Of a stretch of DNA of 64,000 nucleotides, positions 21,101 through 24,100 are shown in pieces. Source of the DNA: Podarcis melisellensis. Taxonomy: Eukaryota. Both the position numbers and the translations under genes were made by a program. The notes beneath the pieces are model-generated. The model saw only the letters and a program-made list of their open reading frames with translations. It did not search any database and was not told where the DNA came from. The first letter of the stretch is position 1. Every line of letters starts with the position of its first letter. The DNA is taken from assembly GCA_964234715.1 (NCBI GenBank), contig OZ174275.1; one strand, given 5' to 3'.

Positions 21101-24100
21101 TTGAATCACAGGCTTGCAGCCCGGCACTGACTACAAGATTTACATCTACACCCTGAACGGCAATGCTCGCAGCTCCCCAGTAGTGATTGATGCTTCCACG
21201 GGTAATGGTAGTTTATAAAAACTCATATTAACTGAAATGGTGGTTTCCTTTCCTTTGATCATGTAAATCATCTGTGGCATGTTACAGCAATGATTCTCTT
21301 CCCGCCGCTTGGGCTTTGGGGGAGAAGCAGAATATTCTCAGACTTGTAGCTGAAACATATGGAAACTGTATTTCCCCCTTGAGGGAGATGATGTCATATT
21401 AAAATACATGCACTCAATGGTTTTATTTGTTCCTTAGCCATTGACGCCCCCTCCAACCTCCGCTTCCTTACAACCACAAGCAACTCCCTGCTGCTCACTT
21501 GGCAGCCACCCCGGGCCAAGATCACAGGATACATCATCAAATATGAGCAGGCTGGGGGGCAGCCTAGGGAAGTGCTTCCTCGTCCCCGCCCTGGCACTAC
21601 GGAGGCCACTATTACAGGTATGTACCCCTCCCCAAAGAAGTCAGCTGTTCAGCTGAGAGGTGGGGTAAGCCTGTTCCTTGCTTGACCATCCCGGGTGGGT
21701 TGGGGGGTTTGGTAATGACAACCTTTGACCCTGCCTCAACAATTTTGCCTGTTGTAACTAGTGCATTATGTCCCAAAGACCTGAAGAACTAAGCCTACTC
21801 CCACATGCATAGCAACAGTCTGGGACCATATACTGGCCATGCTAAAATGCAGCAGGCCAATAGACCACTTTGGTTCAGTTGTTTCAGAAGATGAACCTTA
21901 TTAGCACTTCTAACCTTTAGAAGCCTGCCCCTCTCTCTCTCTCTCTCTCTCTTTCTCTCTCTCTCTCTCTCTCTCTCGAAACATGTATATCACATCCTTT
22001 CCACTATGACTGCGTTTACAAAATCTGAACTTAAACAGGACAACAGATGAACAGTATTAAATAACAGAGAGATGAAAGTAACAAAACAAGAAAAACAAAG
22101 AAACCATATTAAAATATAAGAAGTTAAACCAGCAAAACCTTATCCCAGCAAGATTAATGTCTATCTGAATAATAACTAGATGGTAGTAAATGGGAGCAGT
22201 GTGTGTATAGAGTACAAAACTAGAAACCTATAAACACTTACCTGGTAGTAAGCGCCATGAAAAACAACAAGGCTTATTTTTGAGTAAGCATGTATAAGAT
22301 TGCACTGCAAGCTGTTGTGTCGACTTTGAATACTGCTTCTTTTCAATACTGCTTCCTTTGAAAAATGGGTTTCTGCCAATCCTTTGTCAGGTCTGGAGCC
22401 AGGAACAGAATATGTCATCTATGTATTTGCTGTGAAGAATAATCAGAAGAGTGAACCATTGATTGGAAGGACAAAAACAGGTAAAACACCTTCAATCTTA
22501 CTGAACACGAAAGAGAAGCTAGATGCAGTTGTTTTGAATTTCAGTTAATGCCATTGCCACACAACTGATGGCACATCACTGCTTAAAATTTCCTTTCTAT
22601 ATCTGGACACAAGTGGAGACACTCATCAATCTGTATATATATATTCAGATAAGTTGGTAATCCTGACCTGCAAAGTACTAATGCAGTTTAATAGATTTAG
22701 CTGCGGTTGACAAACCTCCTTTCACTTTTTGTCTTTCCTGTTTCCTACTTTTAAGATGGTTGACTTAATATTGCTGCTTACCTCTGAATCTGTTAGAAAC
22801 TGAGGATACACTCCAATCCAAATTAAACATGTCTGCTCAAAATTAAGCTTCACAACATTCAATAGTATATGGGGTGGCATCCTCAGCATTTAATTTGATT
22901 GGTGAGAGGTAAGCACTTGCTTAACTCTCCTTAATTGTAAATCAGTGGAACCTACAAATGCTTGATTTGATCTGGATTGTAAACCAGATAAACTATATTG
23001 ACTAGTAGATATCAGTTGATGCAAGTCTGATCAAAAATCAAAATGTTTATTCGGCTTTACGCCCATCATGAAACACACACAACAAAATAAAATAAAATAA
23101 AACAAAACAGCGGACTCGTACAAACCACAAATAATATAACACAATTCACAACTCACAAGGGCAGATATTAGCCATTCATAAGAAAAGATTAAGATTAAAA
23201 AGATTAAGATTAAGATGCAAGTCTGAGTGACTTGTTCATACATTATTAAGACACAAGAGTTGCTTTTTTCTCAGAAGAAAGGGAGTCAAGAGCTTCAGTC
23301 ATGGAAGATTGACATAACTCAGTTAGTTTCAAACCAGATTCACCTTTGAAGTTACAGATAGGTAGCCGTGTTGGTCTGCCATAGTCAAAACAAAAAAAAA
23401 TCCTTCCAGTAGCACCTTAAAGACCAACTAAGTTAGTTCTTGATATGAGCTTTCGTGTGCATGCACACTTCTTCAGATACACACTGAAGAAGTGCATGCA
23501 CTGTATCTGAAGAAGTGTGCATGCACACGAAAGCTCATACCAAAAACTAACTTAGTTGGTCTTTAAGGTGCTACTGGAAGGATTATTTTTTTTTTGTTTC
23601 ACCTTTGAAGTGTGTGATAAGTAGTTGTAAAGTAGAGGGGAGTTTAGGTGTTATCATCCTAAGCTAAATGATTTTGGAAATAGGTGCAAGGGGTAATGTA
23701 ATATATAACATTTCTCCTCTTTAGCTGAAATTACATCAAAGGAACTGAATATAGTGGTTCCAGGGCATAGTTTGAGGGTACATAATGCAGCCTGGTGAGA
23801 GTTGTGTACACACTGCCTTCCATGGTGGAAGAGTGGCAGGATAGAAATGTTCTGCCATTCATTCATTCATTCAGCAAAAGATCATTTGTGGCAAGAAGGT
23901 TCTCTTGCTTCATAGGGGATCGTCTCAAAGGTACAAAAATTGTCATCACTTTGGCTCATCTTGAGTTCTGTGGGCACATGCTTTTGCCTTCTGGCTGAAG
24001 CGCTCTAAGTAGCCTCTGTAGAGAAACTGCATGATGACTTTTCAGGACCATGTACTGTAGCACCCTTGAGAATGCTGCTAATGTTTAATTGCTTGAATTA

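Follow-up and report, generated by a model that had tools for sequence, protein, structure and literature searches.

Minimal type I hammerhead motifs have been known since 2014 to be carried by Penelope-like elements (PLEs), a repeat class whose copies are scattered by the thousands in the genomes of non-mammalian vertebrates. The features of these minimal hammerheads listed by Cervera & de la Pena 2014 (PMC4209133) go beyond the descriptor with which that paper carried out its own searches. Families of the motif occur in reptiles, and pairs of motifs on opposite strands, separated by 100-700 bp, have been described, for the most part not within full elements (PMC4209133). Helix III of the minimal hammerhead carries no loop, so that two copies must pair, and cleavage in vitro is poor even for dimeric constructs (PMC4209133); cleavage as dimers is also attributed to PLE hammerheads in a review, with reference to Lunse et al. 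2017 (PMC6765202). As insertions, PLEs often comprise a head-to-head inverted, 5'-truncated copy, together with palindromes at the inverted junction, a tail of 30-40 bp that is confined to one end, and a short target site duplication (TSD) (PMC8557442, PMC3846280). The only PLE that has been studied in vitro is Poseidon_Ac of Anolis carolinensis. The purified protein of this element cuts and extends both DNA strands, and its reverse transcription starts at two internal sites, the spacing of which equals the tail (PMC11167929).

Here we describe an insert of 245 bp in an intron of the fibronectin gene FN1, found in a window of 64 kb (the whole stretch of DNA that was analysed). The insert appears to be a lineage-specific retroelement insertion of the PLE type that has no coding capacity and is composed of two pLTR copies arranged head-to-head, and the hairpin formed by its RNA is most likely silent in FN1; we put the probability of this reading as a whole at roughly 0.78. 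The insert would accordingly be another copy of the repeat class described above. What the present analysis adds as new is an empty site for the insertion and a reading of its one-sided tail.

Gene context and structure of the insert

FN1 is encoded on the + strand of the window, and fn3 Pfam domains are found on this strand. Exons of the gene were read singly, rather than as a joined spliced model. The exon preceding the host intron ends at 22480 (donor G/GT at 22480/22481), the acceptor AG lies at 24208-24209, and the V exon starts at 24210; it contains the peptide NLDVPSTV, which is followed by a type III repeat matching fibronectin in the PDB. The predicted cleavage position of the + strand hammerhead, C23536, lies 674 nt upstream of the V exon. 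Elsewhere inside FN1, at 10845-10902 (+), there is a tRNA-like sequence with a score of 36.5 bits, which is the sole Rfam match at gathering level in the window and is likely to be the head portion of a tRNA-derived SINE.

The positions of all features are collected in Table 1. The two TSD copies are direct repeats, identical at 14/14 positions, and the 245 bp between them (23353-23597) constitute the insert. A repeat search identifies inverted arms of 94 nt at 23388-23481 and 23502-23595, which are 96% complementary and separated by a spacer of 20 nt. Inside these arms sits an 83-nt core with 2 mismatches, corresponding in the arm alignment to the part before the T/A runs. When the two arms are aligned with each other, they differ by 3 substitutions and by the length of the T-run. 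The 5' ends of both arms are identical, 5 nt before CUGA, whereas at the 3' end the left arm extends 35 nt beyond the right arm. At its end (...CCTATCTGTA), this tail contains once more the TATCTG with which the hammerhead arm opens.

An earlier note on this DNA had described a ~245-bp insert with a perfect 14-bp TSD, 83-bp inverted arms with 2 mismatches, a third partial core in the spacer and a + copy transcribed as part of the FN1 pre-mRNA at ~670 nt from the V exon that follows. The distance given above agrees with the last of these statements, and each of the parts is present at the coordinates it was assigned; the partial third core lies at 23484-23494, and the repeat search lengthens the arms. 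The insert also shows the hallmarks by which PLE insertions are recognised, namely a TSD that is accompanied by an empty site elsewhere, an inverted copy in head-to-head arrangement with a palindrome at the junction (23492-23501), and a tail in the range of 30-40 bp (PMC8557442, PMC3846280, PMC11167929) at one end only, in this case the 35 nt of the left arm.

Table 1. Features of the insert and of its host intron (positions refer to the 64-kb window).
Feature	Position	Strand	Basis or remark
FN1 host intron, from the final exon part for FN type III repeat 14 to V (IIICS) exon	22481..24209	+	
Left TSD, TTCACCTTTGAAGT	23339..23352	.	Identical to 23598-23611; single copy at the L001 empty site
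35-nt tail, 3' extension of the minus-sense copy, without counterpart on the other arm	23353..23387	-	Arm alignment
Left arm, sense on the minus strand, hence antisense in FN1 RNA	23388..23481	-	Inverted repeat
Minimal hammerhead motif, minus copy, C17 at 23447	23443..23480	-	Descriptor, arm alignment
Junction spacer: partial third core CTGAAGAAGTG-CATGCAC lacking TG, plus 10-nt palindrome GTGCATGCAC	23482..23501	+	
Right arm, sense in FN1 pre-mRNA, T-run at end, tail-less	23502..23597	+	Repeats, arm alignment
Minimal type I hammerhead motif, + copy, C17 at 23536	23503..23540	+	Descriptor, feature list of PMC4209133
Right TSD	23598..23611	.	Identical to left TSD

The hammerhead motif

An identical 30-mer, CTGAAGAAGTGTGCATGCACACGAAAGCTC, is present in both arms, at 23507-23536 on the + strand and at 23476-23447 on the minus strand. 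For the descriptor CTGANGA-N(8-30)-CGAAAGCTY, 0.01 chance matches are expected in the 64-kb window, and a looser descriptor for minimal hammerheads retrieves these two copies only. The inverted repeat has doubled a single motif, and the two copies do not count as independent events.

In the + copy, stem I consists of 4 bp between GUAU (23503-23506) and AUAC (23537-23540). The core CUGAAGA (23507-23513) is followed by an extra A (23514) and by stem II (23515-23528), which reads GUGUG-CAUG-CACAC, i.e. 5 bp closed by the loop CAUG, and forms a perfect palindrome of 14 nt. The 3' part is made up of GAA (23529-23531), AGCU (23532-23535) and C17, with cleavage predicted between 23536 and 23537. The minus copy differs in stem I, where GUAU faces AUAU and the closing pair is G-U. 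All positions of the conserved hammerhead core are found, that is C3-U4-G5-A6-N7-G8-A9, G12-A13-A14, A15.1...U16.1 (A23532...U23535) and H17 (C23536), and in these the minus copy is identical. Among the features specific to the minimal variant (PMC4209133), the extra nucleotide A23514 and the pair G23515-C23528 are present, a short helix I (4-5 bp) is combined with a long helix II, the 5 bp of which are at the low end of the described 6-8 bp, and helix III is the loopless palindrome at 15.2-16.2, here AGCU (23532-23535). The claim that each arm holds a complete minimal hammerhead of the published Penelope type is thus upheld, every published sequence feature of the PLE motif being present. In both arms, the frame opened by the ATG in loop II runs for 9 codons before it meets a stop, and no ORF starts at stem II.

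Covariance models gave a different outcome. An Infernal search with Rfam hammerhead models had been put forward in the earlier note as a check, and no hammerhead family was returned in any run: neither types I, II and III nor HH9 and HH10 have a gathering-level match on the window, nor a match at E<=10 on excerpts of 351 nt and 53 nt. Recognition as a ribozyme is accordingly by descriptor and not by a scored model. Such a miss is expected for a hammerhead variant without loop 3. As an isolated RNA, the excised hammerhead has no folding advantage over shuffled sequence (-7.6 kcal/mol, z = -0.07). When two copies are cofolded, a domain-swapped duplex via the stem II palindrome is predicted (-32.2 kcal/mol); the published loop-loop dimer lies outside the scoring of nested structures.

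An orthologous empty site

Exact look-up of the 137-aa V-exon ORF returned no record. A word search with this ORF led, through a 175-aa call, to L001, a Logan contig of 2,291 bp from run ERR14042333, which is colinear with the window and shows 96-99% identity to it in this FN1 intron. Positions 263-369 of L001 match 23247-23352 of the window, and positions 356-1442 match 23598-24686. The 14 bases common to both matches (L001:356-369) are the TSD, in one copy, and L001 is the orthologous empty site with exact boundaries. The presence of a single 14-mer at the empty site, together with the TSD of the filled one, identifies the insert as a lineage-specific retroelement insertion.

Since the flanks diverge by ~3.7% and another two large indels occur within 2.3 kb, the source of L001 is taken for a related lizard rather than for a member of the same population; the contig is not human sequence. 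Divergence between the arms, in their unambiguous part, is ~2.4%. If the arms were identical at the time of insertion, comparison of these two values would place the insertion after the split from the L001 lineage, which is a rough estimate given that it comes from few differences only.

Two other length differences from L001 are seen at this locus. In the same FN1 intron, a second lineage-specific insert of 183 bp (23031-23213, within 23018-23226) is absent from L001; it is flanked by a 13-bp direct repeat, GATGCAAGTCTGA, ends in AAGATT repeats and looks like the 3' end of a 5'-truncated LINE or SINE. In the intron after the V exon, a stretch of 1.2 kb (~24696-25923) is also absent from L001, and may reflect either an insertion in the window or a deletion in L001; no clear TSD was found.

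Predicted behaviour in FN1 RNA

RNA of the insert is predicted to fold as one long hairpin of -160.8 kcal/mol (z = -27). With flanks of 50 nt included, the probability of pairing between the arms is ~1 and that of the local hammerhead helices ~0, and imposing helices I and II on the sense copy carries a cost of ~43 kcal/mol. These values support the proposal that the antisense arm, which is transcribed first, masks the ribozyme. With the left arm in antisense orientation, and with neither GAAA nor a cut site in the spacer copy, the transcript contains a single sense copy of the hammerhead; there is only one in the 64-kb window. Absence of the insert from L001 further argues against a conserved role in FN1. 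Taken together, the masking, the lack of a second sense copy, the poor cleavage of PLE hammerheads and the absence from the relative make a role in FN1 regulation very unlikely, and the insert is most likely inert in FN1, beyond serving as a possible dsRNA substrate.

In vertebrates, the typical substrates of ADAR are long inverted repeats within introns. The hairpin may accordingly be a biochemically active dsRNA that is ADAR-edited or diced, with at most incidental effects on V-exon splicing or on the silencing of related elements. The duplex predicted here, 94 bp long and 96% paired with pair probabilities near 1, is consistent with this, and hairpin-shaped microRNA models score 60-66 bits on it, all of them under their gathering cut-offs. 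However, these Rfam microRNA matches mirror the hairpin shape only, and the insert is missing from a close relative, so that no conserved role is possible; we regard an active dsRNA as biochemically plausible, but less likely than not. A further reading is that of a conditional self-cleaving switch, in which the sense hammerhead, unmasked by editing or protein binding as the earlier note had thought possible in principle, would control V-exon inclusion or transcript yield. Although the core is complete, in sense orientation and 674 nt before an alternatively spliced exon, unmasking finds no support: the ~43 kcal/mol of masking would have to be overcome, helix III needs a second sense copy and the window has none, PLE hammerheads are poor cleavers in vitro even as dimers (PMC4209133), no RNA-seq read ends are seen at the cut site of the Anolis PLE (PMC11167929), the insertion is lineage-specific, and retrozyme copies are depleted from Xenopus introns (Li et al. 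2026 preprint). Such a switch is exceedingly improbable. Also very improbable is a more than passive role, in which the young hairpin, as a 94-bp intronic dsRNA 613 nt upstream of the V exon, would be edited, diced, or transiently opened in such a way that the sense hammerhead cuts, and in which this lizard lineage would thereby have gained from a TE a new means of modifying V-region splicing of fibronectin or the output of FN1.

Origin of the insert

Under the preferred reading, a source segment of ~95-130 nt from the 3' terminus of an element (the pLTR), carrying the PLE minimal type I hammerhead, would have been copied twice in head-to-head orientation. Target-primed reverse transcription by the PLE machinery may have been primed from both cut DNA strands. 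One cDNA, initiated at the distal start site on the template, would yield the arm that bears the 35-nt tail; a second, initiated at the proximal start site, would yield the tail-less arm. The two cDNAs would then meet and be joined at the palindromic hammerhead region, leaving the partial third core behind, and a staggered cut would account for the 14-bp TSD. In the RNA of the FN1 intron, the arms would form the long near-perfect hairpin that buries the single sense hammerhead. The presence of a tail on one arm only is the outcome to be expected from priming on both strands at two reverse-transcription start sites. When the 129-nt sense unit is folded, 8 bp are predicted between AGACCAAC (23371-23381) in the tail and GUUGGUCU upstream (23421-23428), and this pairing may represent a stem close to where reverse transcription starts; the fold of the unit as a whole is not significant (z +0.82).

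The Penelope-type origin put forward in the earlier note is supported by the hammerhead features and by the layout of the insertion, so that the term "Penelope-derived" refers to motif and insertion architecture and not to homology with an RT-bearing element. No PLE ORF is found in the 64-kb window. The two-anchor pattern has 0 matches in viral or metagenome contigs and the hammerhead 24-mer has 0 matches in metagenome contigs; since these collections probably contain no lizard DNA, neither count has a bearing on copy number.

The nature of the template is a separate question. Instead of the terminus of a full PLE, it could have been a short non-autonomous hammerhead element, retrozyme- or SINE-like and ~120-130 nt in length, that was mobilised in trans by PLE enzymes, in which case the arms would be full-length copies. 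Both arms share the exact 5' end, and a short defined template explains this common stop no worse than random 5' truncation does, although joining at the palindrome could also give a shared 5' end. There is no ORF continuing past stem II, and the repeated TATCTG at the end of the tail is what a template from a head-to-tail array would be expected to leave, with a unit of ~119 nt. The same 5' stop in both arms and the TATCTG repeat make a short retrozyme-like template a serious sub-variant of the PLE reading, and it may be compared with the vertebrate non-LTR retrozymes, which have been traced to PLE pLTRs and whose consensus averages 176 bp in reptiles (Li et al. 2026 preprint). On the other hand, the locus has no tandem copy: no array is present in 23200-23760, where the copies are inverted and not head-to-tail as in retrozymes. 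By itself, the sense unit shows no unusual degree of structure (z +0.82), unlike rod-like retrozyme RNAs, and the argument is based on one copy. We consider a non-autonomous source possible, but the less probable choice. ARAGORN finds nothing resembling the head of a tRNA-derived SINE in 23250-23700.

Long inverted repeats and a TSD are also what a miniature inverted-repeat DNA transposon (MITE) would show, in which case the hammerhead-like boxes would have arisen by chance. A duplication of 14 bp is, however, unusual for cut-and-paste families. Terminal inverted repeats at both ends of the insert, as a cut-and-paste transposon would have, are not found, and a MITE is unlikely because the inverted repeat stops short of the left terminus, from which it is separated by the unique tail of 35 nt. 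Moreover, T/A-rich ends and a duplicated junction are typical of reverse-transcription products, and the complete set of PLE hammerhead features would need a coincidence. A MITE is therefore very improbable as the source, and a PLE-type retroelement insertion remains the preferred reading.

A second palindrome with a hairpin layout like that of the hammerhead insert occurs in the window at 44043-44345 (arms of 141 nt, 99% complementary, with a spacer of 21 nt). It was considered as a relative of the insert and rejected, since CUGANGA...GAAA boxes are missing from it, and presumably represents another kind of fold-back element.

Comparison with known systems

The intronic hammerheads of amniotes (Rfam HH9 and HH10) are of the canonical type, form stable monomers, show conservation between species and are matched by Rfam models. 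They resemble the FN1 copy in that a sense-strand hammerhead lies in the intron of a protein-coding gene. Unlike them, the FN1 copy is minimal, masked, lineage-specific and without an Rfam match.

Animal non-LTR retrozymes (PMC7229834; Li et al. 2026 preprint) are, like the insert, short and non-coding, carry type I hammerheads that require dimers, and are linked to PLE pLTRs. However, retrozymes are defined by tandem units in head-to-tail orientation, whereas the FN1 insert contains an inverted pair and no tandem. With Penelope insertions that have inverted pLTRs (PMC3846280, PMC8557442), the insert shares the inverted 5'-truncated copy, the tail at one end, the junction palindromes and the short TSD. 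In those insertions the pLTRs usually flank a body that bears an ORF, whereas here there are two terminal segments only, and the TSD is 14 bp long, as compared with 8-10 bp in the rotifer examples of Penelope. With respect to the minimal hammerheads of PLEs (PMC4209133), a difference is that helix II of the FN1 motif is a perfect 14-nt palindrome.

A further comparison is with Poseidon_Ac (PAc) of Anolis carolinensis (PMC11167929), in which the motif, parsed by eye, has the same layout: CUGAGGA-U-stem II-GAAA-CG-U-C. Helix III is a palindrome in both, ACGU in Poseidon_Ac and AGCU in the insert, and no similarity between the two is apparent outside the core in a comparison by eye. The ORF of Poseidon_Ac starts at stem II, while the corresponding frame of the insert closes after 9 codons. 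Distances from the cut site to the 3' end of the element are on a similar scale, being ~82-89 nt plus tail in Poseidon_Ac and 61 and 94 nt in the two arms of the insert. The one-sided tail fits the two reverse-transcription start sites of Poseidon_Ac, and the presence of two arms is in line with the way in which this element extends both DNA strands. Class, hammerhead variant and insertion configuration are thus all already known, and the value of the insert is a modest one, as a clean, datable specimen that combines an exact TSD, an empty site, near-identical arms and Penelope-type hallmarks in 245 bp.
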